Part shown: in pieces, positions 1-36,353 of the stretch
Layout of the letters: each line of letters starts with the position of its first letter
How positions within the stretch are numbered: position 1 is the stretch's first letter
Assembly: GCA_002269645.1 (NCBI GenBank)
Contig: NIVC01002144.1
Location: 163,022 to 201,206 of the forward strand
Reading direction: 5' to 3'
Origin: Macrostomum lignano
Lineage: Eukaryota
DNA length: 38,185 nucleotides
The notes under the pieces: model-generated
The model's input: the letters and a program-made list of their open reading frames with translations, nothing else
Told to the model about the DNA's origin: nothing
Database searches by the model: none
Program-made: the position numbers and the translations under genes

Positions 1-1640
1 GCATTTTTCATGCCGCATTTGTAGCGTTTGACACGGTAGAGGCCGCGTGAGGTGTTGATCACTGATAGTTCTTCCGCAGATTCATCGAGAGCTATTTGCC
101 AATAGGCAGAGCGCAAGTCTATTTTCGCAAACTTTTTTGCGTTTTTGAGCTTGGCGAATAGGTGCTCAATTGAGGGGATTGGATAGGACTCCGACTTGAT
201 TTTCCCATTGACGTGCATTTTGTAGTCGGCACACATGCGCAGCGAGCCATCTTCTTCTTAACCCAAACAACAGGCGATGCGTTGCTTACCGGGCCCTCAA
301 TTGCTCGAGCTCTCTAGCTCGGCATTAACTTGTGGCTCCAGCGCAAGTGGAACTGGACGAGCGCGGCAGAACTGTGGTCTGGCACCTTCAATCAGTTCCA
401 TGCTCGCTTTGATGCCCTTGATGGTCGGCAGTGGTTCATTGGCAGGTGCCGCTGTGGCAGTGGTGGCTGCGTGGAATACGGCGTCGCCATCTAGAAGATC
501 GCGTCCTAGCAGGCCGAATGTCTTTGAATATATGAAACCACCATCAGCTCAGCTGGATGAATTCGACCGCGCATCTCGACGGTTGTAGACAGTTTTCCCA
601 ATGTCTTTAGGATGTGGCCATCATACGCCTCGAGTCGCCGATGATACTTGTCCAATTTGAGGCATTGCAGCGATTCCCAGAGGTGGCTAGAAAACACTGA
701 AACTGAAGCTCCGGTGTCGATCTGCATCGGAATAGCGACACCGTTGATCAGCACAGTTTCTGTCGTTACCGAAACAGCATGGATGAGATCTACGTCTGTC
801 AGATGGAGTACATCAGAGGCGTCGGAGTCCGAGGTTACAAGTTTTGTGTCCATATGGTTGACCTGTCTGACGCCACTGGAGCGGCACACGGATCCAAAGT
901 GGTTGCGCTTGTTGCATTTGTTGCATGTCTTTCCGTAAGCCGGGCATTTGCCAGCTGGATGAGATCGGCCACAAAACTTGCAGTCGCCTATGTGCCGTTC
1001 ATGGGACACGCTACCGCCTCGATGCTGCCGAGCTCCCTTCCCTGTGAAGTTGATGGAGTGTCCTTCTTGGGTAGGCTCTGTGTCAGCGTTTCGAAGATCC
1101 TTGCTGTCTACGAACATCGTCACTTGTTCGATAGTCCTGACTATATCCACGATTTTGGCGATCTTCAAGTCTTTCGTTTGCATGGCTCCCAGAATGCGTC
1201 GTTGATCTTCTGGGTTCTGCAGGCCAGAGATGAGCATCAGACGTACTATTTCCTCTTCCGGTCTGGTGCAGGTTTTTAGAGCATCGAACTCGCAGTGCGT
1301 GGCCCCTTCCTCAAGCGAGAAAGGAACTCCGTAATGGCTCATCGGCAGCTTGACGTAGCGTGAAGAATTTAGTTCTCTCAGCAACGGCAAGGTGCTTTTG
1401 GGGTTGCAGAAAGTTCGTAATGGCAGTCTCCAGCTCCGCAAAGGTGTGTGCTTCCACTTCTTTCGGTGCGACAAGATGAGTAACTTTTTCGAGAGCTGCT
1501 AGTCCACAGAGCGCTAAAAAGTTGTCCGTGATTTTGTCGATCTGTTTCTTTATCTTCCACTTCTTGGTTCGAGCCAAGGCTTTGAATGCCTTAATCCAGG
1601 TTAATGCATGAACCGTGTCAGTAAGATCCAGATTGCCAAG
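1..1640 (-). pseudogene. gag-pol polyprotein remnant with several frameshifts
   Basis: Continuous homology needs frame changes near 1320, 510, 290 and 255. ORF-track pieces 1311-1577 and 506-1474 are two segments of it. Confidence 0.88.
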
Positions 1641-8659: not shown

Positions 8660-9880
8660 CACCCTGTTCTCTTTCCCCATGTATACCCTTTCCTGTTCCC
8701 TTTCTCCTATTCTCTTTTCCCTGTTCTCTTTTACCTGTTCTCTTTTACCTGTTCTCTTTCCCTGTTCTCTTTTCCCTGTTCTCTTTTCCCTGTTCTCTTT
8801 CTCCTGTTCTCTTTTCCCTGTTCTCTTTTCCCTGTTCTCTTTCTCCTATTCTCTTTTCCCTGTTCTCTTTCTCCTGTTCTCTTTTCCCTGTTCTCTTTTC
8901 CCTGTTCTCTTTTCCCTGTTCTCTTTTCCCTGTTCTCTTTCTCCTGTTCTCTTTTCCCTGTTCTCTTTTCCCTGTTCTCTTTCTCCTATTCTCTTTTCCC
9001 TGTTCTCTTTTCCCTGTTCTCTTTTCCCTGTTCTCTTTTCCCTGTTCTCTTTCTCCTGTTCTCTTTTCCCTGTTCTCTTTTCCCTGTTCTCTTTTCCCTG
9101 TTCTCTTTTCCCTGTTCTCTTTTCCCTGTTCTCTTTTCCCTGTTCTCTTTCTCCTGTTCTCTTTTCCCTGTTCTCTTTTCCCTGTTCTCTTTCTCCTATT
9201 CTCTTTTCCCTGTTCTCTTTCTCCTGTTCTCTTTTCCCTGTTCTCTTTTCCCTGTTCTCTTTTCCCTGTTCTCTTTTCCCTGTTCTCTTTCTCCTGTTCT
9301 CTTTTCCCTGTTCTCTTTCCCTGTTCTCTTTCTCCTATTCTCTTTTCCCTGTTCTCTTTTCCCTGTTCTCTTTTCCCTGTTCTCTTTTCCCTGTTCTCTT
9401 TCTCCTGTTCTCTTTTCCCTGTTCTCTTTTCCCTGTTCTCTTTTCCCTGTTCTCTTTTCCCTGTTCTCTTTTCCCTGTTCTCTTTTCCCTGTTCTCTTTC
9501 TCCTATTCTCTTTCCCCTGTTCTCTTTCCCCTGTTCTCTTTCCCCTGTTCTCTTTCTCCTATTCTCTTTTCCCTGTTCTCTTTCCCCTGTTCTCTTTCCC
9601 CTGTTCTCTTTCCCCTGTTCTCTTTCCCCTGTTCTCTTTCCCCTGTTCTCTTTTACCTGTTCTCTTTTACCTGTTCTCTTTTCCCTGTTCTCTTTTCCCT
9701 GTTCTCTTTTACCTGTTCTCTTTTCCCTATTCTCTTTTCCCTGTTCTCTTTCCCCTGTTCTCTTTCCCCTGTTCTCTTTCCCCTGTTCTCTTTCCCCTGT
9801 TCTCTTTTCCCTGTTCTCTTTCCCCTGTTCTCTTCCCACTGATCTCTTTCCCCTGTTCTCTTTCCCCTGTTCTCTTTCCT
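8660..9880. repeat. Polypyrimidine minisatellite, 14-bp unit CCTGTTCTCTTTTC, between the two tetraspanin start codons
   Basis: About 1.2 kb of near-pure C/T with about one purine per unit. Confidence 0.97.
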
Positions 9881-10240
9881 TATTTTTTCCTCAAATATTG
9901 AACATAGTACTTAAAGTAGTAGTCAAACTATCTCAGCTACGTTAGCATCTTACTTTAGCCTCTCCACTTTGCTTTCAGTTTTAGTTGTTGACCTAATCTC
10001 TATGCTCTTGAAACTTGACACTTCCTCTGCTGCAGTTCTTGCGTCAGTCATTCATCTCCGAGCGCACTGCCTCTCAGCAGCTATCGTGTCTGTTTACCAA
10101 TTGGTTGTCATGGAGACGAAAGTCGCGCTAGACCGACACTTCGGCGTTGTAGAGTTTATAAAAATGTTAAACAACATAAGTTGGCAAGTCGCAAAAACCA
10201 GTCTGATTAACATTGCCGTCGAATCTTGACTTTTCTAGCT

Positions 10241-13200: not shown

Positions 13201-13999
13201 ATTCTGCTCTATGGCAGTCCGGAGACTGTAAGTTGAGTTGTTTGTTTAAAAATCCGACTCAGTTTGATGGTTGCAACTGGTTGCTGTGAAAGATTCAATT
13301 TAGACTACTGAGAAAAGTAGGCTCATAAAGATTTGAATCGTAAAATCTCTCAAAGGTCCGAAAAATTCGCTATAAAAGAAACGGCAGCGTAAAAACACGC
13401 ACTGAGAGTGCGCACAACAGTCCCCCGTGACTCGCTTAATCCTGTTAAACTATGCCCACAGTTCGACTCGCTAGTGAGGCAGCTGATGCAGCGCTGCGTT
13501 AGGCGTTACAGCGGCATCAGCTCAGCCAACGGTGCCAGCCTCCTGTTAAACGCTATGCAGATCTACGCCGGCTGTTGCGGCACTGACAATGGGACCGATT
13601 TTCAAAACGCGAACTGGAATCGGAGCTACTCGATGACCCTGTTTAGACAGACGTTTACGCACAGTAAGTGCTTGCAGAAAATGCGTACAGAGACCGCACA
13701 TTATAGCACTTTGGTTGCAATTGCATGCTTCATCCTTTTCTTGTTCAATAATTAAGACAATAACGTATATTTACCATTCCATCATAAAATAATTTGTCTT
13801 CTCAGACCTAACCTACCCTGTGAGCTGTTGTCAGTACGACCTGGCTACACTAGAGCTTCGAGACAGCTTCTGCCCCGTTAACAATCGGCACTTCAGCAAC
13901 CACGCAGTTGGCTGCTATAAGAAAATAATCCAGTTTGTACACGAGTACTTTGAGCGGTACTACATTCTGCAATCGCTGGCCGCTATTGTTGGCATTCAG
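10241..13999 (+). CDS. Tetraspanin B, exons 1-5
   Basis: Exons 10241-10327, 12541-12831, 13153-13227, 13462-13663, 13806-13999; GT-AG, phases 0,0,0,1,0, identical to Tsp-A. Motifs GCCGTDNGTDF, NLTYPVSCC, CP, GCY. Confidence 0.92.
10405..12480. repeat. Minisatellite in Tsp-B intron 1, 35-bp unit ACACACAAGATCCCAGCTATAAACTGCATCAATAA
   Basis: About 58 tandem copies with recurring variants; no unique spacers. Confidence 0.97.
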
Positions 14000-15289: not shown

Positions 15290-17686
15290 CTAATCGTGCT
15301 CACACTCTTCCAACAGGGGTACCAGACAAAAACTGCCTGATGGCAAGTTCGGAAAGTTGACATCGACTCGAATGCACCTCGCAGCCACATCAGTGAGACG
15401 TATGCAATTGTAATTTTCCCGAGTGGGTTCCTGACTCGTAAAGATAAGCATATTTCGGAGTGGAACATCAGATGTAAAAAAAGCAAGAAAGATTGCTTGT
15501 TCAGATGCACTAGCACCAATATTGGTAAAATCCGGAACAGCATTGAACAGTAAGTCGATTAAACGACATTGTGGAGTCAGAAAAGAGCCAAAGATTTTGC
15601 TATCGGCAAAATGATTAATAGCAAAATATGAATTTGATACATCCAGGACATACGAACTACATGTTTTTAAAGTGCAATCCGCAGAAGTGGTTGTTAAAAT
15701 TTTACCCCCAGAAGCGCCTAGAGTTCGATTTTCGCGCTCAGGAGGATTGCAGTAGTGCTTAGCGATGACAAGGAGTGCATCAGAAATTGAGGGATTGGAG
15801 CCTGCAGCAGGTTGCAGTGAATACAATAGCACTTTTAGCCAGAAAAACTTTTCGGAAATTTGCTTTCCATGAAATCGACTGCCAAAATGAAGCATATTAA
15901 AGCCATGCATAGCTGACTCAAAGGGAAACATTGATGCACAATACAGAGGACCAAATCGTTCATACTGGTCGGGTAGATGATAGAGAAGATGAAAATTAAG
16001 AAGCATAACACGTTCGCCAAAAAACTCAGGACACAGGTTAAGAAACATATTGCACAGACGTTTTAAAGTTGAAACACAAGAATTTTGCGAGTACAGCAAG
16101 TTATAAATAGAATTAAGAAGAAGGAGCAGGCCCCTAAGTTCGGGATTTTCGATTCGTGGAAGCAGAATTGATGGAAACAGATACAGAGCAAAAATCTTGT
16201 ATGTTTTCGCTTTCCAAAGTGAGAGCTGACTAATTGGAGGAACATTGCTAATACCTTGGGGAAGTTTCAGTTGCATAATCTGAGAGTCGATTACATTGAC
16301 AGATGCTGAGCCTAGCACACGGTAATGATTGGGATTGCAGCTTTTAGTCTTAGAATCAGTCAAGAAGGCTAGAATGTGTTTTACTTGACCTTCCCAGAGA
16401 CAATGCATAGAATCAACAATGAAATTTTCTGGAAAACGAATGATTTTGAGAAGAGCAGTTTCGCGTTTGATTCCAAAATAATCCTTAAGCCCTTGAGCCT
16501 TGAGAACTGTGAGATGCTGCGCATGCATGGCATTAGTTCGAAGCGGAATTCCATGGACAGCGGGGAAGACACGAACTTGGCCTTTTTCTGACACCTTTAG
16601 AGACTTGCCAGGTAGGATGCATCTGGGACAAGCAAATTGTCCGTTGAATTGCTTGATTCCAAAAAGGTGAGATAAAGCGGGCAAATCGCAGGTAAAAAAC
16701 GAGAAGTGAAGAAAAAACGTCACATTCCTTACTTTTACACACGAAGGCAAGCGATTTAAAATAGTAGGCAAAAACTTTTCAAAATTCGGCTTTCCTCGAT
16801 TGGTAAACAAAGCGATTGTGATAATGTTGACAAACTTCTGGCGTAATCTAACAGGCAAATTGAGGCACAGTGCACAGAAAGGCCACACAGACATTTCAGA
16901 AACTTTAAAGAAGTTTGCTCCGTCAGCCGAAAGAAGAAAATACAAGTGAAAAATGTCAGGAGATGAGCCGGTTTCTAGTTCATTGCTAACAGCAGAGTTC
17001 AGAATGTCAGTTTGAAATCCTCGCCTTAGCTCACGCTGGTAAGATAAAATATCATTTAAATGCCTTTCAACTGTAAGCTCCACCTGATGGTTTACATTTA
17101 AGAGCCATAGTCCCTCGAAAGAGTCGACTGGATGTTCACTACAGTTTATAAGTAGACACGCTAAACAAACTTTCACAACGAAGTCCGGTTTTAAAATGAA
17201 TGAACGAAGCAGAACCGCTTCCATTGCTTTGTAAGATGTAGGTAAAGCAGCGCGAGGAGACAGAATGGAAATGAGGCGAAGCATGTTTTTAACAGCTTTC
17301 TTGGAAACGTTCGACAAGATCATCCACAACATTAGAAGGGCACATTTGACCTCCATAGAGATACCTTGGATACAAAAGACAGAAAGAAGGTTACTATCCT
17401 CATCCGCAGAAAATATTTCAGGGTGCTCGATATCAGATGGACCAGCTGCCTGCACTTCATTCTCGTCATCAGCAGGAATTGCAATAGTCGGTTGCTCGCC
17501 GACGTTTGCTTGAATTGCAGCGGAAGAGCTCGAATCGCTGTATTCACCCATGGATGTGTCAATCGAATGTGTACTTGAATCAACCGACATCGAGACATAT
17601 GACGACCCAGAGGACAGACTTTCCGACGACCCAGAGGACAGACTTTCCGACGACCCAGAGGACAGACTTTCCGACGACGAACTCAT
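15290..17686 (-). CDS. CACTA/EnSpm-family transposase, 798 aa, uninterrupted
   Basis: Motifs SADGANFF..SVWP...LNLP..RQK..NI; TCDLPA...GQFACPRC; VDSMHCLWEG; WKA; NFHLLYHLPDQYERFGPLYCASMFPFES match the Tnp2/Transposase_21-like pattern. A short upstream exon is possible (in-frame acceptor near 17720). Confidence 0.9.
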   Translation of the reverse strand: MSSSSESLSSGSSESLSSGSSESLSSGSSYVSMSVDSSTHSIDTSMGEYSDSSSSAAIQANVGEQPTIAIPADDENEVQAAGPSDIEHPEIFSADEDSNLLSVFCIQGISMEVKCALLMLWMILSNVSKKAVKNMLRLISILSPRAALPTSYKAMEAVLLRSFILKPDFVVKVCLACLLINCSEHPVDSFEGLWLLNVNHQVELTVERHLNDILSYQRELRRGFQTDILNSAVSNELETGSSPDIFHLYFLLSADGANFFKVSEMSVWPFCALCLNLPVRLRQKFVNIITIALFTNRGKPNFEKFLPTILNRLPSCVKVRNVTFFLHFSFFTCDLPALSHLFGIKQFNGQFACPRCILPGKSLKVSEKGQVRVFPAVHGIPLRTNAMHAQHLTVLKAQGLKDYFGIKRETALLKIIRFPENFIVDSMHCLWEGQVKHILAFLTDSKTKSCNPNHYRVLGSASVNVIDSQIMQLKLPQGISNVPPISQLSLWKAKTYKIFALYLFPSILLPRIENPELRGLLLLLNSIYNLLYSQNSCVSTLKRLCNMFLNLCPEFFGERVMLLNFHLLYHLPDQYERFGPLYCASMFPFESAMHGFNMLHFGSRFHGKQISEKFFWLKVLLYSLQPAAGSNPSISDALLVIAKHYCNPPERENRTLGASGGKILTTTSADCTLKTCSSYVLDVSNSYFAINHFADSKIFGSFLTPQCRLIDLLFNAVPDFTNIGASASEQAIFLAFFTSDVPLRNMLIFTSQEPTRENYNCIRLTDVAARCIRVDVNFPNLPSGSFCLVPLLEECEHD

Positions 17687-18146: not shown

Positions 18147-21100
18147 CTAATCACCGGCCTTTCGCTTGCGGAAGGTTGACTCTGGACCAAGTCGATTCAG
18201 AGAGTCTTTGACGGCTGTCCACGCAGAAACCGTTTGATCCCTCGGGATATTGAAGGCCTTGTTCAGAATGCCTAGTTTTTTTTAAGAAAGATTTTATAGT
18301 AGCAGCAAATTCACACAAACATTTTCCAACAATGGAATGGCTACAGTGAGCCAGTTTGAATTTTTAGCTTTAAAAGACTATATAGAATGACCTGCATCCA
18401 TCTAATGCCCACAATACTAAGTCAGTTGCCAAAAAACATTCAGTTGCAAAGAAATTGTATCGCTTACTCTTAAGATGGTCTTGCACTTCTCCTGGAGCCT
18501 TTGGCCTTTGTGTCGTGCCTTTGTACTCTCCGAAAACATGCGATTGCACATACTCGACGCCATACCTCGCAGAAGCATATGCCCTGATGAACTTCGACGT
18601 CGTTGTACGAGGCAGATCTGAGAAATTGCAAACTCGCCCATCGTGGCCTTCAAATTCCTACGAAAAAGTACAAAGAAAATTGGTACTCAGGACCGATTGT
18701 TTGGATTATGTCATGATAAATGTCAGTGAAATGTGAAAACGTCAAGCCACATGAAGAAGAGCGAAAAATAAGAAAAACAGTAAAGTAAAATGGCAAAGTA
18801 AAGCATATAATAATTTTATAGTAAATGGTTAGTAAAGAAAGTAAATTAATTTGCACAGAAACTGAGAAACCTACCTCCTTAAGGAAATCAGCTGATACCA
18901 TTTGATGCAAGCTGGATGATGAAGTGCGAATCTTCCTCAGTTTGTGAGCGATGAACCGCTTCAAACTGTCTGAAACATTTGGTGTTTCACATTTGTACTA
19001 TACTGATAGTGATTACATAAGCAGCACGAAATGCAGGATTTGTGAGTAAAAAAGTTGTATTACACTGAGATAATGAGAATAAAGCATAAAAACAAAAGCA
19101 CAAGAAAGAAATAATTAAACCTTACCCATTCCTTCCTGAAATTCAGCCAGTGTGAGAGGCTTGGAATTTGTGGGATCGTTTGCACTTGCTGCCTTTGCTG
19201 ATTCATGAGCCTGAAGAACTTGAGGAAGTAGTTCCGGTGGTAAGGCACGCTGTTCCTCACTTGCAATTAAAGCCAATGATGCCTCAGAATTTTGGTGTCT
19301 GTCTTCAACATGAGTACCAGCTGTCCTTGGCCGCTTGTTTGCTAGACTGCCTTGAGATTGCTTCCTAGCACGAGAATGAGCAGCTGTAGGTGTCGAAACT
19401 GGACTTGGGCTTACAAAAGAAACCTGAGTAGGAGGCGGAGTAGGCTGCCAGGTCTCATCATCATCCGAATCGTCAATATCACCTGCATCTTCATCACTTG
19501 AGTCTTCTTGTTGTCTCATGAAGACTTTCATATGAGACTGGACATGATCAGAGAGCTCGGAGTTCTCCTTGTTTTCAGTTATGAATGCATCAAGCTCCTT
19601 CTCAAGGTAGATCATTTTTGACCATGGTTCAGCTGCAATGAACATGCCATTGAAAATGCCATCCTTGAGAGCAAGTGGGTAGTCCTCACCCTAAAATAAA
19701 AATGTGATTCATTATTAGATTTTGAGCTAATATTAGACCAAATTAATTTTTTAATTAAGAATTATAAACAAACTAAATAGAAAATTCTTTTTAGAATAGT
19801 TAACAAAATAGATATAGCCTATTAGAAAGTTAGACAAACTAAACAAAAGAGTCCTTTAGAAAGATAGACAAGCTAAAGAGAATAAATCCATTGGAAAAAT
19901 AGACAAACTTAACTAAAATAAAACTTTAGATAGCTTAATAGAGTTGGCAAATATAGCCTATTAAAATACTAGGAAAACTAAAAGTATAAGAAATATTAAA
20001 ATAGAAAACTAAAGCACTGGACAATAGTTCAAATAGTAAACTTGCTATTGGATAGAATATAGGGCCTACCTTATCAGCAAATAGACCTTCCTATGAATTG
20101 AACACCTTAGGCTTAGCATAGGAATAAAATAGCTCATAGATAAATAGATATATAAACATACTGAGACCACTATATAAAATGTTATAAAAATCAATGAAGG
20201 CAGTCAAGTTTGAAAATGAATACATTATACAAAATATATATTAAAAAAATAGACAATAAGACATTTAAAAATGGCCAAAATTCTATTGGGTTGTTAGGAA
20301 AGTTCTGTCCGTTTTTTATTTTTCTATGCAGAGGATCATGAAGCTGTGTTGGATCCAATACTTGTGTATGCATATACAGCCAGAGTTGTGGTCATTCTAA
20401 CCAAGTCATTTGCTTTTCAGCGCCCAATTATGGCCAGAAATTTTGAATTAAACAGCATCGCTCTAAGGCAGTGCATGCTATATGATTTTCTAGCAGGTAT
20501 TACAGCAGCCGAATCGACTCGACGCCTGTGCAGTGCATTTGGCCAGGATGCTGTCTCTGACCGCACAGCCCGTCGTTGGTTTGATCGCTTTCGCAGCGGC
20601 GACTACAGCCTTGCTGACGAACCTCGCCCTGGACGCCCATCTGAGATAGACACTGAGCTGCTGCGGACACTTGTGGAGGCCAATCCGCACCAGACTACAC
20701 GAGAGCTGGCAGCCACTCTTGGGTGCTCCCATGTGCAAGTCGCTGAACACCTGGCTGCCATGGGCAAGAAAAGCAAGCTCGGACAGTGGACCCCCCATGA
20801 CCTGACTGACAGGGACCGTCAAAGCCGAGCAGACATTTGCACCTCACTGCTCTCCTACAAGAGAACAACAGACTGGCTGGCCTCAATACTCACTGGCGAT
20901 GAGAAGTGGGTGATGTACGTTAATATACACCGCAAGCGCCAGTGGGTTGATGCCGGCAAACCGCCACAGCCAGAGCCAAAGGCCCCACTGCACCCTAAGA
21001 AGGTGATGCTCTGCTGTTGGTAGGACAGTGAAGGAGTTGTATACTTCGAGCTGCTGCCGCCCAACACCAGCATCACCGCCGAGCTCTACTGTAACCAGCT

Positions 21101-24100
21101 GCAGAATGTGGCCGACTGCCTCCGCACACAGCGTCCAGGGCGTCAGCATGTTCGCTTCCTTCATGACAACGCTCGGCCGCACACCGCCAATTTGACCCGA
21201 CAAAAGCTGCTGGATCTGGGCTGGGAAGTGCTGCCCCACCCACCGTACAGCCCCGATCTGGCCCCTACAGACTACCATCTTTTTCGAGCGCTGCACCATC
21301 ATCTGAAAGAGAAAACGTTTGAAGATGACAAAGGGGTCAAGGACTGCATTACTAACTTTTTTGAATCACAGCCCAAGGATTTCTACAGAGCTGGCATCCA
21401 AAGTCTGCCCTCTCGTTGGCAGAGGGTCATCGATTGCGATGGCAATTATTTTACTGAGTAACACTGCTGCATTCCTATAAAAACTCGCTCCAACATATTT
21501 TAGTCAAAACGGACAGAATTTTCCTAACAGCCCAATATATTCTCTCTATACTTAGAATAGAGAACATATAGAAAAGAAAGGAAAGCTAGCCAAACCAACC
21601 ATAGTTCTTTATGCATGAGTTAGCTAATCATACTCTAACATTGATAGCAACTAAACAGCCTATTTCAAGCACTAAAAAGTAGTCTTTTGCAAATTAAACA
21701 GCCTTGGCCTAGTATTACTAAAACTATAAAAAGATGAAATCTTAGAATAAGCCTAATTCACTAAAAAATACCTAACTAGTTCTATAGTTGGGCATCAGGG
21801 CCTACTCCCTACATGGCCTAAACTAGGCATATGGCTATAGAAGCCCAGCCTACTAGTAAAACAATATAAAAAACTATTTAGCTTCATTTAACTTTAGGCC
21901 CTAATCCATAGTTCGGAAGAGGGCATGTACGCCGGAAATTTCCGGGGTACAGTCAAGAAATTTGGCGTACATGTTGGCGTACAAATAGTAATTTTCTAAG
22001 GCTTTTGGCGTACATGTTTAACCATGATTATTAATTTGGTGTGTAACATGCACCAAAAAACAAAAAATTCGTAACCTAGTGAAATCAATAACAGTTACAA
22101 AGTCGTTCATTATGCATTTACTGTAAAATTTCACGATTGATGCAGAACTGACTTTCGTGTTTTTTGCTTGTGGTGAAGTTGTAATTTTAACAAAAAATGC
22201 ACAAATTTTACTTAAATTTTATAAATAAACTGTGTACATATAAATCTGTCACTTTTTAATAGTTCTTACTAATAAATAAAAAAGTTACTTTCCGTTTTCA
22301 ACATAGACAATTTAAAATTAAATATGTTTTTATCGGGCCGTTTTGGGCGTGAGACATTTGATATTCCAGATAGATACAACCTGGACATTCATTTAGGTTG
22401 TATCGGACTCAAATGCGCGAGTCATCCCAACCTTCGCGGCCCAGCAGTTCCTTGGATGCCCGTCAAAACGGCCACACGCGGAACGGCCACACGACAAAAC
22501 GGCCACACCGTTAAAACGGCCACACGACAAAACGGCCACATAAAACAAAAAGGGTTGCAGATCGATTGCTCATGAGATCCAGCTTATGACATCAAAATGC
22601 AAAAGAAGTAAATGCATTGAGATATTGTGAAATTTATGTAGGCCGAAAAGGATCCGAAAAGGAAGCACCAGAGAAGCGAAGACGAAATTGTTTTTTATGG
22701 AGCGACCAGCAGTTATGCAAATTTTTAAAAGATGCTAAAATAGTTGTGTAAGAAAGCCTCTTCCTCTTCTTCCAGTACTGTTGGAAGCTCCAGCTCAATT
22801 GTTGGTTCGTCAATGCCAACATCCAATTCTGTGCTATGCAACTTAAACAAGCTGTCTACAAGTGTCTCAGAGTCAGCCTCGAGGCCTGAAATGTAGAGAA
22901 TTGGAATGTAGAAAAAAATCTGCTTTATCTCAACTTCACATGCATCGACTTACCTAAACCTTCTGGTAACAACTTCAGGTGCGTCAGATGCTGGTATCCT
23001 TATTCGCAAATGTAAGGCAGGTCGCTCCTCAGCAGCTAAGCTGGGTTCCGCTGCCGCACTGTGCTCAGCAGCTGAGCTGGGTGCTAGCAGGCAATTTGGA
23101 CAAAACCATGGCATCGTCTCATTCTTCATGGCATTGTAGCGAGCTATAGAAACGGCTGCGTCTCCTGCAGTAGCAGCAGATATACAATAATTACCAATTA
23201 CAGTTAATTCAAATAATTACAACTATAACAGCATACTATAAACAGCAACTCACCTTTCAGACACAATGCATGCTGGCGAGGTCTGACTCTAAGTAGACAC
23301 TTTGGACAACTGTCGTCCATTGTTAAAAATGAAAAATGAAAAAATAAAAAATTATTACATCGTGTGGCCGTTTTGTCGTGTGGCCGTTTTGACGGTGTGG
23401 CCGTTTTGTCGTGTGGCCGTTCCGCGTGTGGCGCGTGTTACGCGGAATAGCCACACAACAAAACGGCCACACCGTTAAGCAATGAAGCAGCAATGAACCA
23501 ATGGGATGCAATTGCGGAGTCATAGGGTGCACTCCATGAAGCCTTTCGAGCTGAAAATCCTCGGTGCAAGATTCATGAGCAGCTACAGTACCAAATGTTT
23601 GGAAGTGATTTTGTTTTCGATCTCCTATAAGTAATATATTTACATAGAAGACAAATTTAATAACTGCACTGTAAAACGACAACGTCACAAAGATATATGG
23701 CGTACATCGGCGTACACAAAAAAAATTGGTAGTTTTTTTTCCGGGGTACATACAGAGTGTTCCGAACTATGGGCCCTAATAAATATATTTGTAGGAGTTA
23801 ATAGATATTTGATAGTTAGGCACACAAAACTACATTCATTTTAAGCCATATGCACTCAAGCAATTTATTTATTTTTTCAAATCCTGCAGAATTTTGTATA
23901 CAATATGCAATAGCATTTGTAACAATTACTAGGATTAGGCCTGGGCCTAGTAAGTAAGCAAAAAATTACTTACAAAAATGAATTTCACATCAGGCTCATT
24001 ATGGCTAAGTGCAAGACTGCCACGGGAAAAGTTATGATAAGTTCTTGTCTTTCGAATGAAGAATAGTAGGTACTTCGAATCATAAAATGACGCAGCAGAA

Positions 24101-26135: not shown

Positions 26136-26852
26136 TTGATAATTTTATCTCTGAAATTGCACCCTTTGATTTTATTCCGTAAAATAATAATGAACTTTTA
26201 AGTAAAGTATAAAAAAGCAACTAAATGTAGCTAACATCCTGGATTTATCAGTTTTTATTTTGTGTTTTACGTACTTTTTTACATATAAAAAGTAATCATT
26301 TTATCAGATAAATTCTGCAGTTTTACTTAATTTTGGTTGTGTAAATATAAATTCTTTAAAACCGACAACTTTGGGTCGATTTCAGAACGACGACGACGAT
26401 CTATAATTAGTTAAGCCCACTTGCTTTCTTTCTTTTTCAGCCTTTAGATTTTTGCAGTAGAAAAACCAATGTTTAAAACCGTTTCTATCAACAAGCAAGA
26501 AAATTACGCGTAAAAGGAGAAAGCGTGTAAATTTAAGGGTGATACTTTGCCCTTCTGTAAGTAGTTTTATGCCTGGACATGCACATTTCATTTTTTAAAT
26601 TGGCATCATTCGATTGCCTGTCTGGAGTATAAATTATACATTATCTTTTTTAGCTAGAGAATTCGTCTTATAAATTCATAATTGCCTTTTAATTTTACTC
26701 TTAAGCTGAGGCAGGCTGCTAGTGCTAGGCCTATTACTAATATTAGTAAAGTATTAAAGTTGCCTATTAGTATTATTATTAGACATGAAGGTCTAAGATT
26801 TACTTTATTATGGCATTAGGCTTTAAAGTTTAAATTATGGTATCAAGCCTAA

Positions 26853-27639
26853 GGCTCATTCTATATAAGATGGACATTTTTGGAAAATAGAAAAAAGTCA
26901 ATATTTTTGCTTGCCATTGCCTTATCAGCCAATTTTTTTACCAAATGTTTTTTATGTATAATATCTACAATCTAAGAATAAATGAATGATAAAATGTTAG
27001 ATTAGTATGCTATCAAGTGGCAGAAAGTCATTTTTGTAAAAATTTAGACATTTTTCTAAGCAAAAGACATCATTAAGTTTGTGTACCTTTTAAAAACAAA
27101 TAGAAAGCTTTGGAAGGTTGAAACAAACTATAGATAAAAGTATAGTACTTGCATTATCAGATAAAAGTATTGGTGACCAAATAATCTATTATATTTTTAA
27201 TATATTGGTACCTCAAAGTTACTGAATTGACAGAAAAAAATATGTTACGACCATAATGTTACGACCATAAGGCTGCCTTTTCTTTTGTATCTTTGTTGCC
27301 TTTTTGAGTTTATATATTCTACAAAAAGAGTATGATTACTAAAGATGTTCTTAGTCAACTTTTTAAAAATGTATTGCAAAATATCAAAAATAAAAATGTT
27401 ATAAGACTTTTACCTTTTAGTTTCTATATGTCAAAAATCCTGTTGTTACGACCATAAGTGCCATTCAAGGTTTAATAGCATCTATACTAATGATGATATC
27501 TACATGAAACTCTATAAAAATATTTTTGACAAAATTATCTTTCATTTAAAATATTGGTTTAGTATATTCTATTATTATATTTCATTTTATAAGTAAAAAT
27601 AGCCTGTCATGTTACGACCATGCTTATATGGAATGAGCC
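26853..27639. mobile_element. 787-bp non-autonomous TIR element, 4-bp TSD CTAA
   Basis: GGCTCATTCTATATAAG-ATGG versus reverse complement GGCTCATTCCATATAAGCATGG; CTAA on both flanks; internal TGTTACGACCAT motif four times. Confidence 0.65.
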
Positions 27640-29954
27640 CTAAGTATTTTAGATATATCCATCAAGTGCTTTGTAAAGGCTTTAGTCTTTAGAATTTAGA
27701 AATTTTCTAACAATACAATAGTATACAGCATTCTACTGTATCCCTACATTTAATTATTTTCTTTGAAAATTTTAGTTTCTATTTAGTTTATTGATAAATA
27801 CTATAATGGATTAAATAGAAAGATTTATGAAGTTCAACAGATAAATTGATAATTAGGCCTATCAACTAGTAAAACTAGTGAATGGGAAATCCTAGGCCTA
27901 TAAATAAACAGTTGTACAATAAAACAGCAATAAAAATGGTTGTAGATATAGGTAAATGGCCAGTCATGGTTTTAGGTATATTTATCAATATTGTGTTTGA
28001 GTTATTGAGTCTACTGCATTTGCCCTGCGTTGACTTTATAGTCAGGAAGATAGCCTTTTCATGGAAAATTTGGGAGTAAAAAGAGGTTAAAGGTGCACTG
28101 TGCCAGCATAATATGGTGCAAGAAAAAAATTGGCACTTTTTTGTAAAAGACAAAATCTTATGACCAGACAATATTTTCTCTAATAGAAAATTAGCATATA
28201 ACTAGCAATCTAGTGTAGCCCCCCTTTGGGGTGCCTACTAAGAAAAGAGCAAAAACAGTTCATGGAAAACAATAAAAAGGCACATTTTCTTAAATACCAG
28301 TTCCTTCTTCACTTTTAAAAATCACCTTATTCGTGTAAAATTGTCATAGTCAAAGATGTTTGCAAAGTAAAAGAACCATTTTTTCTTTAAAATTAACAAC
28401 AGACTACAAAATATAGCTTCCCCTAAATAGAAAATATTCCCAAGACAGCAAGCACCCCCTCCAAAAGTAAACAACCCCAGATAGCAAGCATTCTGTAGAT
28501 AGCAAGCATCTCCCAGATAGCAAGCATCTCCCAGATAGCAAGCATTCTGCAGATAGCAAGCATCTCCCAGATAGAAGCATCCACCCAGATAGCAAGCATC
28601 TCCCAGATAGCAAGCATTCTGTGATAGCAAGCATCTCCTAGATAGAAGCATCCACCCAGATAGCAAGCATTCTGTAGATAGCAAGCATTCTGCAGATAGC
28701 AAGCATCTCCCAGATAGAAGCATCCACCCAGATAGCAAGCATCTCCCACATAGCAAGCATTCTGCGATAGCAAGCATCTCCCAGATAGAAGCATCCACCC
28801 AGATAGCAAGCATTTTGTAGATAGCAAGCATTCTGCAGATAGCAAGCATCTCCCAGATATTGTTGAAGCATCCACCCAGATAGCAAGCATCCTGCAGATA
28901 GCAAGCACCTCCCAGATAGTATAGAAGCATCCTGCAAATATAATAAGCACCCCCCCCCCCAGATATTATAGAAGAATCCACCTAGATAGCAAGAATCCCT
29001 AAATAGCAAGCATCCTTAGATAGAAAGAATCCCATACATGTAGCCAATACCCCCTCTCCCAAATAGCAAGTATCCCCCCTCGAGAGCAAGCATCCTCCAG
29101 ATAGCAAGCATCCGCAAGACAGCAAGTAGCTAGTGCAAATGTTACCTCTGCTAATGCAATAATAGCTTTCTTAGGTTGTGCAACAATCCATGTCTTAGCG
29201 AGCGCAATAATCTCTTTTAGATAGCGCAATAATTGGCTTCTCAGCTAGTGCAATAATATTTTACTCATCAAGTCCAAAAATCAATGTCTCAGCTAGTGCA
29301 ATAGCCTTTTCTAATCTAGTGCAATAATCCTTGGCTTATCAAGTGCAATAATCCTTGGTTTATCTAGTGCCATAATCCAGGTCTTTTTAATTAGTCCTTT
29401 AATAAAAGCTTTCAATGAAAAAATTTATGCTACTTTTATTTTTTATTTTACACTACTAAGATTCAAACCTAGGTTGCTGCATTAGCAGTCCAATCTGTTC
29501 ACCTCTATTCTAGCTCTCATTGAAATTATAAAGGAATTTGTAGCACTTATAATTCAACACTCACACCAAGTCAATTGAGTAAAAGTCACACGAAGCAGTT
29601 ATGACATAATCAGTTTCTTAGGCAAGTTAGTACCAGTCTCTATTAAAGTTAGCAATGTGGTTACGCAATATAAATCAAGTATTGTACTATGCTTCCACAC
29701 TGCGTTTTCAATACTGTGATGCAATTCAATTCAGTGTCAAAATTCAGCCAGTATATACAGACAATAAATAAAAAGCCTATTGTGATGCAATCTATTTCAG
29801 AATCAGAATTCAACCAGTCAGTTTTTCCCTAGCATTCCTACAATGCATTTCAAGTTGAAAGAGCTGCTTGACCTTTGCAAAAAAGCTTGTTTTTCGAATA
29901 TTTAATCCCTTTAGCATCGAGCAATTTCTTAGCCACGTTGCATGTACTGTCAAG

Positions 29955-30265
29955 GGAAAATTTCTGATTAAACAGTGCAAGTTTGAACAAAATCGGTTGA
30001 GCCATTTTTGCTAAAATCGATCACATACCAAGATACCTAGATACTTATATTACATGCACAACCTAGGGAATCACTGGGCCATTTCTATTGGCGACACACA
30101 CATGTAAGTTGCTATTGGCTGAGAGCAGTCACGTGACTACTATTCTGTCCAATAGCAACTTACATGTGTGTGTTGCCAATAGAAATGGCCAGGTGAATCC
30201 ATAGGTTGCGCCCAAGCATGCCTAGATACCTAGATACTGACATACCATTTTTAGTATATGGATTT
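29955..30265 (+). mobile_element. Helitron/Helentron-derived (DINE/HINE-like) 3' fragment
   Basis: CAAGTTTGAACAAAATCGGTTGAGCCATTT core, an AGATACCT/ACATAC microsatellite, and a terminal TTTTAGTATATGGATT resemble this family. Assignment is from remembered consensus only. Confidence 0.45.
30056..30211. repeat. 156-bp near-perfect palindrome (MITE-like) centred on GTCACGTGAC
   Basis: Arms GCACAACCTAGGGAATCAC.GGCCATTTCTATTGGC.ACACACACATGTAAGTTGCTATTGG and its reverse complement; centre 30132/30133. Confidence 0.85.
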
Positions 30266-30529
30266 CTTTTTATTAGCAGTTTTTTATTTGCCAATGTATT
30301 GAAAGCTTTTTAATTAATTTATGTAAACAAAGCATTTTCTATGAAAGAGATTCAAATACAAGTTTTACTGGTATTTTTAAAATGGCAGATTATTGATTTT
30401 TGCATTTTTTCAAAAAGTTATAGTACATGTGACACAGGCAAACTTTTTGACATGAATAGTTCTGGCACACAACATAATCAAACTTTTTTGATAGGATTTG
30501 TCCTGGCACAGGCATGCTATGATCTTGAT

Positions 30530-30823
30530 GGGGGGAATCACAAACCCAAAAAATCACAACTCCAAATGTTTTCTATCATAAACCCAAAATATCATAAACC
30601 CAAAATATCATAAACCCAAAATATCACAACCCCAAAATAACATAACTCCAAAATTGCTAGCAGCAAACATTATAAACCCGAAAAATCACAAACCCAAAAT
30701 ATCGTAATTCTGAAAGTTCTAGCAATGTCCAACACTAGTTTGGTTTTTGGAGTTATGATATTTTGGGTTTATGATGGGAAGTGCTTTGAGAGTTGTGATT
30801 TTTCAGGTTTATGATGGCAACCC
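30530..30823. mobile_element. About 294-bp MULE-like MITE with tandem ATCATAAACCCAAA modules in inverted arms
   Basis: Inverted modular arms; flanks ATCTTGAT / ATCTTGAC (8 bp, 1 mismatch). Confidence 0.65.
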
Positions 30824-33048
30824 ATCTTGACTATGACACTAACTGGCCATTGACTAAGTCTACCTATCTAGTAGGCAGTCACAAGCATTTTGTCCATTGC
30901 TTTTTCATTTCTTGATAGAAAAATATTTATAACAAAAGAAATTAAATTTAGTTTCATTCATATACTAAAAATAGTCATTTGGTATCAATTATTGCACTTA
31001 ATAAGACAATGATTATTGCACTAGATAGAAAAAATTTTCCACTGAATCCACAGACTGAATCCACAGACAAAAATTATTCCACAGACTAAAAAAAACTATT
31101 GCATTAGCTAAGACATAGATTATTGAATTACCTGAGAAAGTAATTATTGCATTAGCCAAGGAAATAGTTGCACTAGCTTCTAGCTATCTGGTAGATGCTT
31201 GCTATCTAGTAGATACTTGCTATCTGGTAGATACTTGCTATCTAGAGGATGCTTATTATTTGTGGGTTGCTTGCTATTTTATTTAGGGAGAGGGCGCTTC
31301 TTATTGTATTTAGATGGGAGGATGCTTGCTATCAAGATATGCTTGCTGTCTATGTCTAGGGATACTTGCTGTTTGGGGATGCTTGCTATTTGGGGATGCT
31401 TGATATTGGGGAGACATGAGGCTTGCTCTTGGGGATGGGGGATACTTGCTACCTGGGGGCTGTTTGCTATCTGGGTTAATTTCTATCTGGCGGATGCTTG
31501 CTGTCTTGGGGATGTTTTCTATTTAAGGGAAGGCTTGCTATCTTTGTGAAGAAAGAACTTTAGTTGTTCTTTAAAATGTTCTTTTAAATAAAGGGGGCAC
31601 TAGATTGCTATTAATTCTATAGCTTACTTTTCATAATACAATTTGTGAGTTGTGTAAAAATTTATAGTTATATGTTGTTTAATATGTAGTTTTATTTGTC
31701 ATAATATTTTAGAGAAATGGGATAACCCATTGTATAATATTTAAATATTAGGACAAGCGGGTGTTGCATTTTAGGCTACTGGTTTATTATTGCTATGCTT
31801 AGTGGATTTACTGGGTTGAGTTTGTAGGTCACTGCTACTAGGCTCCTGATATTCTCTAATCCTAGTATGTTAGTGAGTAAAAAACTGTAAGGACACCAAT
31901 ATAGTATTTTTAATTCAACACAAACTTTTAAAAGAAAGAAAAGATTTTTTATTATACAAAAGAGTGGCTTGTTACATTATCTAAGTGCTTGGGCAAGACT
32001 CCCAGTTAGAGGCAAGATTCCTCTTTGTGCATTCTAACTCTATTCCCCTATCCCTTTTACCTTTAACTTCCTTAAATTCTAAGTTGAGCTGCGGAATGCA
32101 GCATGGGTGTTCAGACAGGCTTTCTTTTCCTAGGAGCCCAACTGTTCTATATTAGTAGAGAGCCCAAAAATTCGCGGTTTACCCCCATCATAATTACCTT
32201 CGCTGGCCAAAACTACTGACAGTAGTATAAAAGCATATTTGTCCTGTCTAAATTCTGCCCCTAAACTATGCCCTACTACATATCCAATAGGAAGACAATT
32301 TTAATTTTAACCAATCTTCTAGTCCATAAAACTCAATGTCTTTAATTAGATGATTTATTGATTATAATTTATCTGTTAGGCTTATATTTGATAGATGATT
32401 GACAGATAGCCAGGTTAATAAAAATGTAAACAAAAAATTATGGTAAATATTGTTTTTAGATATGCTTATACTTCTAATAAAATTAGTTGCTTGTTATCAC
32501 TAATATTAAAAAAGAGTTTATCTATTGCTATCTCATTCTAATATCATAATGCTAATGTTGTAATAAATATTTTGTGGCAGACAAAAAGAGTAACAGATGA
32601 ACTGACAGACATCAACCATAAGTCTTATATATACCCCATATTGACTAACCACTGACTAATTCGACCCATCTTCACCCAACTGTCAGACTTGGTGCCATAG
32701 AAATTTTATAGCTTTAAAGCTTTTTTAGGAGGAACTCGAGTCTTCTATTGGGTTATAGACTTAACCAATAGACATGTTTGCTACCATATGTATATTGTGT
32801 AGTTCCATATTGGAATAAGTTTGAAAAATCTATAGACAATCTATAGACATGCAACATAGACCACAAAAATAGCCCAAAAGTGCAACAAATTACATAGAAG
32901 CATTAAAATACACTGCATAAAAGCATAACACAAACACTGAAGATGAAATGAAAAATGTTTCGATGAGGGCCTATGTTATTTTAATTCTTAAATTATTTTA
33001 TAATAACTCATTTGCTGAAAAAGCCATAATGTGGCACAGCCCACACGC

Positions 33049-33183
33049 ATGAATCACTCCCCATCATCTGCCCGCTGCCCGCAGGTGGACGCATCGGCAG
33101 AGCCGCCTGAGTGCCTGCCGGCGCTAGTGCTAGCTGATCACAATCGAGTCCCACCTTGGGACCCTGATCCGTTTGGCACTTGA
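33049..33183 (+). promoter_or_regulatory. Candidate polyamine-responsive upstream ORF (44 codons, ...PECL...VPPWDPDPFGT*) 5' of the ODC-like gene
   Basis: ATG 33049 to TGA 33183; PPW at 33151-33159. GC-rich coding-like island in AT-rich DNA, 190 nt upstream of the ODC-like ATG; resembles the PEGL...EPPWEPS* end of the vertebrate AZIN1 uORF. Not present in the supplied ORF track (too short). Confidence 0.75.
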
Positions 33184-33372
33184 ACTCTGGATTGTTGACT
33201 TTTTTCTGTTTTTTTGAGTGTTTCCTCTTAAATATTTTATCGCCTCCATTGTCTGTTGCAATCAATCAGATTTAATTTTTTATACTTGCGCATCATATAC
33301 ATGTCATACTACTAACAAAGACTTAATTTAGATCAGTAGCAAGTTTAGCGTTGTTTTTGTGTTATTTACCTG

Positions 33373-36353
33373 ATGAGAGAATCGCAACTGGAGCATCAGC
33401 AGCCTCAGCAGCAGCACCTGCTCTCAGCCCCAACACCGGCAGTTTGCCCACCAATTGGATGTGCTCTGGCGCCTCACCTGCCCAATCTTGAGCAATGCGA
33501 TCAGCCGGTTGTGGCCTGCGACTTGGCCAGCGCCCAGCGCTGTCTGGCCGACTGGTGCAGCCGGTTTCCTGGCGTGCACGCGTCAACCAGCGCCCAGACT
33601 CTGGGCAGCTGGCCACTGACCCACGTGTTGGCTCTCAGCGGCCGCGTGTCCTTTCGGGCCTACTCTAAGGTGAGGCTGACGGTTAAAATAACCTGTCTTT
33701 GACCTTATTTGCTATAATAATAATAGTAGTAATTGAAGCAATTCAGAGTTAAGTGTCTTGCTCAGGGGCACACAAATATTATTCCGAGTTGACCTGACGT
33801 GTACTTCGCCCACGTTACTTGACCTTAATTGATCAAATTGACCTTTATTGTCCCAATTGACCATAATTGTCCCAATTGACCTTCAATTGTCCTAATTGAC
33901 CTTCAATTGTCCTAATTGACCTTCAATTGTCCCAATTGACCTTCAATTGTCCCAATTGACCTTCAATTGTCCCAATTGACCTTCAATTGTCCCAATTGAC
34001 CTTCAATTGTCCCAATTGACCTTCAATTGTCCCAATTGACCTTCAATTGTCCCAATTGACCTTCAATTGTCCCAATTGACATTCAATTGTCCCAATTGAC
34101 ATTCAATTGTCCCAATTGACCTTCAATTGCCCCAATTAACCTTCAATTGTCCCAATTGACCTTCAATTGTCCCAATTGACCTTGATTGAGCAGTCCGACC
34201 TAAACGCTGCCGTGTCCGCCGGAGTCCCGGGCCACGCCATCCTGCTGGCCAACCCGTGCAAAACTCGCGGCCTGGCCAGGCACGCTCGTCGCCTTGGCGT
34301 CGGCGTCACCGTATTCGACTCGGAGCCGGAGCTGGCCCGCCTAGCCGCGGCTTGGCCGGACGTCGAGCTGCTGCTTCTGCTGGCCGCATCGCCCCGCTGC
34401 CACCGGCTGGGCGCCCGGCCCGAAGAGGCGCCCCGCCTGCTGGCCGCCGCCAGACGCCACGGACTGCGAGTTGCCGGCGTAGCCGTCTGGTTCGGCGACG
34501 ACAACGAATGCGAGGGCGACGACGGCGGCGAGGTCAACTCCGACGTCGACGCCGAGTGGGCTGCTGCCGCGTCGACCGCCTGCGGTACTCTGGCCTTGGC
34601 CAGGCGTCTCGGCCATGCCAATGCCGATGTTGTCGACCTCGGATGTCTGTCCACCGGCGCCTTGGCCGGGCGGGCCCTGCCGGCCTTTGCGAACGCTGTC
34701 GGTGAGACTTTTTATATTTTCCATTATAGTAAGAGAGTTATTTTTATACGTCAAAATTAGAATTCTTATATTATGCTACTGTAGATTTTTTGTAACTACT
34801 CGTATTTTGCCTAACTTTATTAAAACAAATGTTGTTTTGCGGCATAATTTTTTGAGAGTAAAATGAGTGTGATGCTGAATAATGCGATTTTTATGAAATT
34901 ACCAATTAAAATTAACAGGCTATTAATACAAAAAAAGCTGTAAATACTTCGCTTGCTACAGCGTCACAACAATAATACAGGGTATTTCTTTGCAAACATT
35001 TAAGCCTTTAAAACCATTCTTAGAAACGGAGTAATTTTTATAACGTATTTCGAGCGGTTTCTCTCAAAATGCCTGCCTTAAATAGGTATTGGAAACGGTG
35101 ACTGTCAGCCTCGTCTACTCTGCGACCTGACTCCGGCGTTGCTAGCCGAATCCGTTGTCATGGCAACCAGGGTGTTGGCTAAAGCGGCGGCCGAGCAGCC
35201 AGGCTGTGGCGGCTACAGCTACCGGCTCAGCGGCCCGGGCCTCGGCGGCCAACTTTGCGGCCTCTTCAGCCGTGAGTGCGAGGGCGGCGGCTGCAGCGGC
35301 AGCAGAGACGGCGTGCCAAGCCGACTGGCCGACTGCGGCGGCGACCCGTTGAACCTCGTGCTGCCAGAGCTCAGCGTCGGTGACTGGTTGCTATGGCGCG
35401 GCCTGAGGGCCTGTCCGACCGCTGCCAGGCTGATGCACTGGTGAGCCGTGGCTGTTTTTTTAATTCTAAGAGTGGCTTCGAATTCGGCTTTTCTTCCTGG
35501 AAATTTACATGTGCTGTCTTGAACTTTGCTGGAACATTTTTTACTTGGAACTTTAGAATTTCCCTTCGAACTTTGGGAGTTCATTCTTGGGATTTCCCCT
35601 TGAACTTTACAGTTGGCTATTGGGATTTCCCTTCCAACTTTGAAGTTAATTCTTGGGATTTCCCTTCCAACTTTAAAGTTCATTCTTGGATTTCCCTTCC
35701 AACTTTTAAGTTCATTCTTGGATTTCCCTTCCAACTTTAAAGTTCATTCTTGGGATTTCCCTTCCAACTTTTAAGTTCATTCTTGGGATTTCCCTTCCAA
35801 CTTTAAAGTTCATTCTTGGGATTTCCCTTCCAACTTTAAAGTTCGCTCTTGGGATTTCCCTTCCAACTTGAACGTTCATTATTGGGATTTCCCTTCTAAC
35901 TTTAAAGTTCATTCTTGGGATTTCCCTTCCAACTTTAAAGTTCGCTCTTGGGATTTCCCTTCCAACTTGAACGTTCATTATTGGGATTTCCCTTCTAACT
36001 TTAAAGTTCATTCTTGGGATTTCCCTTGAACTTTAAAGTTCGCTCTTGGGATTTCCCTTCCAACTTGAACGTTCATTCTTGGGATTTCCCTTGAACTTTA
36101 AAGTTCGCTCTTGGGATTTCCCTTCCAACTTGAAAGTTCATTATTGGGATATCCCTTCTAACTTTAAAGTTTATTATTTAAATTTAAAATTTCTATATTG
36201 GATTTTTTGGTATTCCCCTATCGATACTGTTAACCTCGCGATGTTCAAATTCTATTTTCAATTTCCTTAATCGTTTGCAGCCTCTTCACCGGCGAGCTGA
36301 TGGAGACAAAGCCCGCAGCCTGTCTGGAAGAGGAGCCGCTGCCGACCGCTTAA
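33373..36353 (+). CDS. Ornithine decarboxylase paralog, predicted catalytically dead (antizyme-inhibitor-like), 4 exons, about 410 aa
   Basis: Exons 33373-33669, 34194-34701, 35086-35440, 36281-36353; GT-AG, phases 0,1,2, open (1233 nt). ODC landmarks: CDL, F..YSK, GV...ILLANPCK, FDSEPEL, VDLG, LPELSVGDWLLW. The start codon is less certain than the internal exons. Confidence 0.88.
33820..34185. repeat. Minisatellite in ODC-like intron 1, 20-bp unit CAATTGTCCCAATTGACCTT
   Basis: About 16 near-perfect copies ending within about 10 nt of the splice acceptor. Confidence 0.96.
35555..36175. repeat. Minisatellite in ODC-like intron 3, 33-bp unit TTCATTCTTGGGATTTCCCTTCCAACTTTAAAG
   Basis: About 18 tandem copies; source of the spurious MNFKVGREIPR ORFs. 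Confidence 0.96.

Follow-up and report, generated by a model that had tools for sequence, protein, structure and literature searches.

The 38,185-nucleotide stretch of contig NIVC01002144.1 analysed here (hereafter the window) holds a short open reading frame (ORF) encoding the tripeptide PPW in front of a gene related to ornithine decarboxylase (ODC), which raises the question of whether this upstream ORF (uORF) acts as a polyamine sensor and, if so, where its translation would begin. The initial annotation of the locus had proposed a self-contained 44-codon uORF, homologous to the upstream conserved coding region (uCC) of vertebrate AZIN1 mRNA and placed before a catalytically dead ODC paralogue. 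Its core, a polyamine-sensing uCC with PPW before an antizyme-inhibitor-like pseudoenzyme, remains probable by homology with AZIN1. The best explanation overall, which we regard as likely, is a polyamine-sensing AUU/PPW uCC in two exons, preceding a dead, antizyme-inhibitor-like ODC paralogue; this adds Macrostomum to the AUU/PPW uCC family, as a known kind of circuit whose structure at this locus is corrected. The host is the flatworm Macrostomum lignano, as had been guessed that a flatworm was the source: the 410-aa spliced product of the main gene, BOX15_Mlig015075 (four exons, plus strand), is 100% identical to the NCBI protein BOX15_Mlig015075g3 ('hypothetical protein').

A leader peptide probably split by an intron

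The ORF first described was recovered in the sequence, with its ATG at 33049 (C at -3, A at +4), its in-frame GTG at 33031 (A at -3, G at +4) and a 44-codon peptide, MNHSPSSARCPQVDASAEPPECLPALVLADHNRVPPWDPDPFGT, that ends at a TGA (33181-33183). The PPW codons lie where they had been placed, an in-frame TGA at 33016-33018 precedes the ORF and leaves the frame open from 33019, and the main ATG follows on the same strand after a gap of 189 nt. The window's six-frame translation contains a single PPW, with about two occurrences expected by chance (a rough estimate, uncomputed); its significance therefore comes from conservation in relatives and not from occurrence of the motif alone.

Relatives of the main product were found by word-based and exhaustive protein searches, and include two groups of dead ODC-like proteins: group A, the type encoded in the window (P0001 from M. 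lignano, P0002 with 80% identity and P0003 with 65% identity), and group B (P0010/P0153 in M. lignano, plus P0007 and P0004). A homologue search with a stricter E-value cut-off returned the same three proteins only. Members from outside M. lignano came from Logan assemblies of two sets of sequencing runs, labelled here species X (SRR28338163-6) and species Y (SRR30276804/12), and we treat these contigs as transcripts because their coding sequences are uninterrupted. A PPW ORF lies in the leader before the main ORF in contigs of both the orthologue (L001, L002) and the second paralogue (L006-8, L010/11), which places uORF and main ORF on one mRNA in these relatives, as had been supposed for the window. 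In every relative transcript with enough 5' sequence, the leader ORF ends in DHN-x-x-PPWDPDP, 0-7 further residues and a stop. Two genomic copies from M. lignano (L004, L005) have identical leaders and carry no comparative information; P0008, considered as an active Macrostomum ODC, comes from a JGI metagenome and was discarded as uninformative.

An in-frame AUU with A at -3 is present in 5/5 leaders, within GAAAATT(A/C)CGCGTAAAAAGA, and is followed by I-T/P-R-K-K-K/R-R/K-R, and no uCC, including the spliced uCC of the window, contains an in-frame AUG. The leader of L001 has no ATG in 426 nt, and the interval from AUU to the called main start is ATG-free in the other leaders; the window's own interval holds a 4-codon AUG mini-uORF (MSYY and stop, 33301-33315) in the spacer, which has a very weak context and is absent from the relatives' leaders.

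When the window was searched for the conserved AUU motif AAAATTACGCGTAAAAAGA, a single site was found at 26500-26518, on the strand of the ORF and with 1 mismatch, where chance would give 0.03 such sites. Read from the AUU at 26503, the frame encodes ITRKRRKRVNLRVILCPS up to a GTAAGT donor at 26557, and homology of the 3' uCC part to the relatives starts exactly after the CAG at 33082-33084. Joining 26556 to 33085 is in phase and yields a 50-codon peptide, ITRKRRKRVNLRVILCPS continued by VDASAEPPECLPALVLADHNRVPPWDPDPFGT and a stop, which is collinear across the junction with the unspliced mRNA contig of species Y (L001, ITRKKRKRINTRVLLSPF VDASSSEPPD...); the distance from AUU to the junction is 18 codons in 5/5 uCCs. 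The group-B locus of M. lignano (L012) has its intron at the identical uCC codon position, with an AUU at 6400, a GTAAGT donor after ...YPF, an intron of ~3.3 kb, an acceptor (cag, then GCGGTC) in an AT-rich region, and a second part reading AVKDPEPPDPNRLLTDHNREPPWDPDPTTG up to a TAG, 125 nt before the main ATG. These results argue strongly that the 26556/33085 junction is the true leader splice. Neither the 44-aa nor the 50-aa uORF peptide had an exact match among called genes.

Table 1. Features of the leader and of the main gene in the window
Feature	Coordinates	Strand	Remarks
Leader exon 1 (uORF1 and uCC part 1)	about 26430-26556	+	Ends in GTAAGT donor
uORF1, 14 codons, MFKTVSINKQENYA and stop	26469-26513	+	Weak context, aaaccaATGt
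uCC part 1, ITRKRRKRVNLRVILCPS	26503-26556	+	AUU start (aagaaaATTa, A at -3) plus 17 codons
Leader intron, inside the uCC	26557-33084	+	6.5 kb, phase 0; donor GTAAGT, acceptor ...ctgcccgcag
5' third of the first-described ORF (GTG 33031, ATG 33049, residues MNHSPSSARCPQ)	33031-33084	+	Probable 3' end of the intron
uCC part 2, VDASAEPPECLPALVLADHNRVPPWDPDPFGT plus TGA	33085-33183	+
PPW codons	33151-33159	+	Predicted pause site sensitive to polyamines and eIF5A; AUU 120 nt upstream in the spliced mRNA
Spacer between uCC and main ORF	33184-33372	+	189 nt, AT-rich, poorly conserved
Main ORF exon 1, dead ODC paralogue	33373-33669	+	Gene model; NCBI protein identity
Main ORF exon 2, with antizyme-binding-element region ANPCKTRGLARHARRLGVGVTVFDSEPELARLA	34194-34701	+
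Main ORF exon 3	35086-35440	+
Main ORF exon 4, including stop codon	36281-36353	+

The main product and the antizyme-inhibitor question

The product of the main ORF matched Pfam Orn_Arg_deC_N at 1.5e-11, and matched human ODC (1e-12) better than AZIN1 (1e-7). Its AlphaFold model (mean predicted local distance difference test score, pLDDT, 67) has a confident TIM-barrel part and a weak C-terminal domain, and the predicted fold matched ODC-family structures at an E-value of 1e-17 with a template modelling (TM) score of about 0.5. The catalytic and pyridoxal phosphate-binding residues of the decarboxylase are established by structural work on ODC, and we numbered them as in mouse ODC by way of the 7odc alignment. 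The window protein carries K69Q, D88R, R154L, H197W, G236C, G237L, R277P, D332S and Y389C, and none of the six Macrostomum proteins retains K69, D88, R154, H197, G236, G237, R277, D332 or Y389; the downstream gene was thus rightly described as encoding an ODC-fold pseudoenzyme. D88R, E94D, R154L and E274D are common to groups A and B, which suggests that catalytic activity was lost before the duplication that separated them. The orthologues have dN/dS (non-synonymous to synonymous substitution rate) values of 0.16-0.24, and by its substitution pattern the gene encodes a constrained pseudoenzyme and not a decaying pseudogene.

The antizyme-binding element of ODC spans residues 110-145, with conserved K, A, E, L and K (PMC6313458). 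K115, A123 and E138 are kept in all six Macrostomum proteins and L139 in the group to which the window protein belongs, and K141 is R in the window protein (taken from the alignment blocks rather than the residue table); no other part of the protein is conserved as well as this element. An antizyme gene has been reported from M. lignano (PMC1874602). The dead paralogue probably sequesters antizyme.

The alternative that survives best accepts the uCC as working and gives the paralogue another task, either as a heterodimer poison of active ODC or in a polyamine-independent role. We consider it possible but on the unlikely side. The heterodimer option was proposed by Ivanov et al. 2010, as relayed in PMC5574924, RNA interference of planarian ODC5/6 gave putrescine-independent phenotypes (PMC5574924), and the C-terminal domain of our model is diverged as well as of low confidence. 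Against these points stand the strong conservation of K115, A123, E138 and L139 and of the ANPCK and FDSE.EL motifs, the presence of antizyme in the animal, and the retention of a polyamine-sensing uCC, which fits a role in polyamine homeostasis.

The group B proteins P0153, P0007 and P0004 carry a C-terminal extension of ~100 aa that ends in a conserved Cys-rich ...ICCSV(L/M)LS.

The 5' end of the leader

The ORF first described holds up in part. Its segment 33085-33183 belongs to the functional element of our reading, and 33031-33084 is without counterpart in the four related uCCs; the latter, with the GUG, the AUG and the first 12 codons, is best taken as the leader intron's 3' end, a C-rich polypyrimidine stretch. 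The weak AUG or GUG that had been put forward in place of AUU thus gives way to a conserved AUU, with A at -3, in an upstream exon. That the uORF is nevertheless self-contained within 33031-33183, initiated at AUG 33049 or GUG 33031 on a transcript starting at about 32990-33030, appears very improbable: its 12-18 N-terminal codons are unmatched in the relatives, homology begins exactly after the CAG that ends at 33084, the upstream sequence holds a conserved AUU exon, in phase and ending in a canonical donor, and the paralogue locus is split identically, behind an acceptor region that is AT-rich. What speaks for it is the open frame with the favourable context of its GUG, and base composition, since 33031-33084 is GC-rich like the exons, in contrast to the gene's other introns, whose 3' ends are AT-rich (GC 0.63 over 33031-33183 and 0.63-0.72 in coding exons, against 0.29-0.38 in introns and flanks).

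Another way to an AUG start would be a trans-spliced isoform, in which a spliced leader (...GCAUG) added at 33085 would create an AUG-initiated short uCC, M-VDAS...PPWDPDPFGT and stop. About 30% of M. lignano genes are trans-spliced to a spliced leader, whose sequence ends ...TTGCATG (PMC8629364), and exon 2 starts in phase 0, so that the leader AUG would be in frame. In none of the five relatives' leaders, however, does a spliced leader stand at the start; all are either cis-spliced to the AUU exon or continuous with it, and we rate this isoform as very improbable.

An alternative AG acceptor at 33039/33040 is in frame with exon 1 and would insert PTRMNHSPSSARCPQ, giving a 65-codon uCC; it has no counterpart in the relatives. 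A TATAAT-like box is located at 26402-26407, upstream of uORF1, and minisatellites occur within the 6.5-kb leader intron at 28476-28919, 29238-29378, 30537-30724 and 31183-31245.

Selection on the PPW peptide

PPW is present in 5/5 uCCs, in agreement with the expectation that it would be conserved upstream of the relatives' main ORFs. Within the DHNxxPPWDPDP block (12 codons), which lies near the uCC C-terminus, 10/12 residues are invariant; variable sites at codon positions 1, 2 and 3 number 2, 1 and 9, respectively, and pairwise codon differences comprise 46 synonymous versus 13 non-synonymous changes, at a between-species dS of 0.7-1.3. The orthologues of M. lignano and species Y are 72% identical in the uCC as against 49% in the spacer. 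This pattern indicates purifying selection at the level of the peptide. That the block is instead a nucleotide-level element (structured RNA or a regulatory DNA site) or an ORF that arose by chance, with no translated peptide, is scarcely credible, because apart from the near-invariance of 19 nt around the AUU at all codon positions, which the overlap of uORF1 and uCC explains, substitutions in the PPW block favour third positions while the amino acids stay constant, the frame is open with a downstream stop in 5/5, and the peptide matches that of human AZIN1 despite different nucleotides.

A stop ends the uCC in 5/5 cases, and relative to the main ORF its frame is offset by 0, 2, 1, 2 and 2, which excludes the uCC as an N-terminal extension of the main protein. 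The C-termini are ...DPDPFGT, ...DPDP, ...TTGRRYC, ...NRSPRG and ...TTG, each followed by the stop, at 4-11 codons from PPW; the 7-residue tail of the window, earlier regarded as a variant, is therefore one of several lengths, and DPDP is the sole constant part.

The UniProt model P0010 (A0A1I8GZH3), which fuses uCC exon 2 to the main ORF (...PPWDPDPTTDQPMPRVF), was rejected as a gene-model artefact, as L012 has a TAG after ...TTG and the 125-nt spacer in 9786-10001; the NCBI model P0153, by comparison, begins at the proper ATG. Annotation of such loci calls for caution, with half of a regulatory uORF lying 6.5 kb off across an intron and one public model joining a uCC exon to the main ORF.

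Relationship to AZIN1 and other regulatory leaders

A profile of the five Macrostomum uCCs matched the human AZIN1 uCC peptide, IPPKKRRRFTRLFGPLSHGELSDQVYNYPEGLGEVLYREQFDFNAEPPWEPS (PMC9648851), with 13.9 bits in two collinear blocks, and 0/20,000 shuffles scored as high. The shared ends read I-P/T-x-KKRRR ... D-x-N-x-EPPW-D/E-P (human N-terminus IPPKKRRR), so that the proposed homology to the vertebrate uCC is borne out by a collinear N- and C-terminal match. The element also has the leader position, the C-terminal conservation, the PPW, the AUU start without AUG and the AZIN1 similarity of that family, and on these sequence grounds it is the M. lignano member of the animal uCC family of ODC-homologue mRNAs, of AZIN1 type.

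The likeness to the vertebrate AZIN1 uCC (Ivanov, Loughran and Atkins 2008 and Ivanov et al. 2018, as described in PMC2811004 and PMC11058473) extends to the arrangement. Both uCCs occupy the leader of an ODC homologue that has lost catalysis and do not overlap its main ORF, both start at AUU followed by a basic KK(R/K)RR stretch in an AUG-depleted leader, both carry D-x-N-x-E/x-PPW-D/E-P near the C-terminus, and their lengths are similar (52 codons in AZIN1, 48-55 in Macrostomum). They differ in that the Macrostomum uCC ends in DPDP plus 0-7 residues and the AZIN1 uCC in Pro-Ser-stop, in that the middle of the peptide is unrelated, and in that the M. lignano uCC is split by a long intron and a conserved 14-codon AUG uORF overlaps its AUU. 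The parts that flatworm and human share are thus the basic N-terminus and D-x-N-x-x-PPW-D/E-P, without the middle or the terminal Pro-Ser, which narrows the residues that matter for the mechanism. AZI1 split from ODC in early vertebrates (PMC2811004), and because the literature places its origin there, the M. lignano host protein is likely not an AZIN1 orthologue and likely of independent origin.

According to PMC2811004, uCCs with AUU-type starts occur in ODC homologues of animals from six phyla and end in Pro-Ser; those of invertebrates resemble the present one in position, in the AUU-type start and in adjacent prolines near the C-terminus. Dead ODC paralogues are likewise recurrent and known from planarians (Ivanov, Firth and Atkins 2010, as relayed in PMC5574924). 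The novelty first claimed for the circuit was therefore overstated. No relevant paper emerged when the literature was searched for a flatworm uCC, the phylum list of Ivanov et al. 2008 being outside the reach of that search; those authors had drawn on M. lignano sequence in their 2007 work on antizyme (PMC1874602).

Planarians have six ODCs, five of them with substitutions (PMC5574924), and their dead paralogues, like those here, belong to a flatworm, have many catalytic residues replaced and have been proposed to be regulatory. The word 'uORF' is absent from the full text of that paper (PMC5574924). Unlike the planarian set, Macrostomum has two paralogue groups with D88R, E94D, R154L and E274D in common, and both keep the uCC. 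The putative sensor has thus been kept on both members of a duplicated and probably independently evolved dead-ODC family, which fits a repeated rise of antizyme-inhibitor-like pseudoenzymes that inherit ancestral ODC leader control.

A model for polyamine feedback

By homology with AZIN1, whose mechanism we took from PMC2811004, PMC11058473 and PMC8705083, we infer use of the AUU, a pause at PPW, dependence on polyamines and binding of antizyme by the product. The AUU would be used inefficiently, such that most scanning ribosomes skip it and translate the main ORF. High polyamines would impair eIF5A, and the few ribosomes translating the uCC would then pause at PPW. Ribosomes behind them may queue as far as the AUU, over ~120 nt (range across the five leaders 114-123 nt; roughly four ribosome lengths), and such a queue would raise initiation at the AUU and block access to the main AUG. 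As the main product would sequester antizyme, its repression at high polyamines would close a negative-feedback loop. M. lignano is amenable to transgenesis (PMC7053086), and these predictions are therefore testable in vivo.

Several points weigh against this model. The junction and transcription start in M. lignano are deduced from splice signals and from the mRNAs of relatives, and given the rate of trans-splicing, some transcripts possibly have another 5' end. The +4 position of the AUU is A or C and not G, which makes its context moderate only, and the main ATG at 33373 is itself in weak context, with C at -3. The terminal Pro-Ser-stop of animal uCCs is not present in any of the five. Finally, the role as antizyme inhibitor is not guaranteed, because the phenotypes of the planarian dead ODC paralogues are putrescine-independent (PMC5574924).

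A short uORF overlapping the AUU

The AUG of uORF1 lies exactly 34 nt 5' of the uCC AUU in 4/4 complete leaders (window; L012, 6366-6410; L006, 53-97; L010, 40-84), and its UAA ends 11 nt past the A of the AUU. The encoded peptides are MFKTVSINKQENYA, MVSFGFFTEPKNYA, MVSFVPVAGPENYA and MVSFVSYSGLENSA, each followed by a stop, and all have a pyrimidine at -3; the L001 contig starts at the G of the expected uORF1 ATG. The 19 nt around the AUU are near-invariant at every codon position because the end of uORF1 overlaps the start of the uCC. A comparable pair is known from plant AdoMetDC mRNA, in which a 'tiny' and a 'small' uORF overlap (PMC2811004): there too, the mRNA belongs to the polyamine pathway, and a short uORF with a weak-context AUG runs into the beginning of a longer regulatory uORF that acts in a sequence-dependent manner. 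The plant pair differs in gene, peptide and overlap geometry; in Macrostomum, AUU opens the second ORF and the two share 11 nt.

In species Y, the group B main ORF (P0004; L010 178-240, L011 168-230) is AUG-less until about residue 107, and the gene caller used GTG. The uCC stop overlaps a GUG (GGGUGACGG; GGGTGACGG), followed by an ACG with G at -3 and +4, and this is identical in two runs. To judge by its sequence, such an arrangement could reflect non-AUG initiation or termination-reinitiation. That uORF1 is a functional second tier of the sensor and, together with the AUG-less main ORF of species Y and its uCC stop on GUG, marks a lineage-specific rewiring of the uCC mechanism is a tentative and rather doubtful proposal. 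Under it, uORF1 could provide one more register position at which the next ribosome of the queue from PPW is caught, 34 nt being about one ribosome length, or serve as a bypass whose ribosomes resume scanning past the AUU and so set the basal rate of uCC initiation.

Other features of the window

Two introns of the ODC-like gene consist largely of tandem repeats, intron 1 at 33819-34183 (20-nt unit x18, 95% match) and intron 3 at 35558-36175 (33-nt unit x19, 87% match). Outside the locus, a mariner/Mos1-type transposase extends over two ORFs at 20346-21461 (plus strand), one carrying HTH_48 and Transposase_1 and the other DDE_3, and is probably a frameshifted, inactive copy. A retroelement gag/aspartyl-protease ORF lies at 506-1474 (minus strand), and a 798-aa ORF at 15290-17686 (minus strand) matched DUF1258 at 8e-14. 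Coding-looking long minisatellites occur at about 6.2-7.8 kb and 8.6-9.9 kb of the window, and a weak tetraspanin-like exon with a CCG motif is found at 13408-13755 (plus strand; E 0.003, below the Pfam cut-off).

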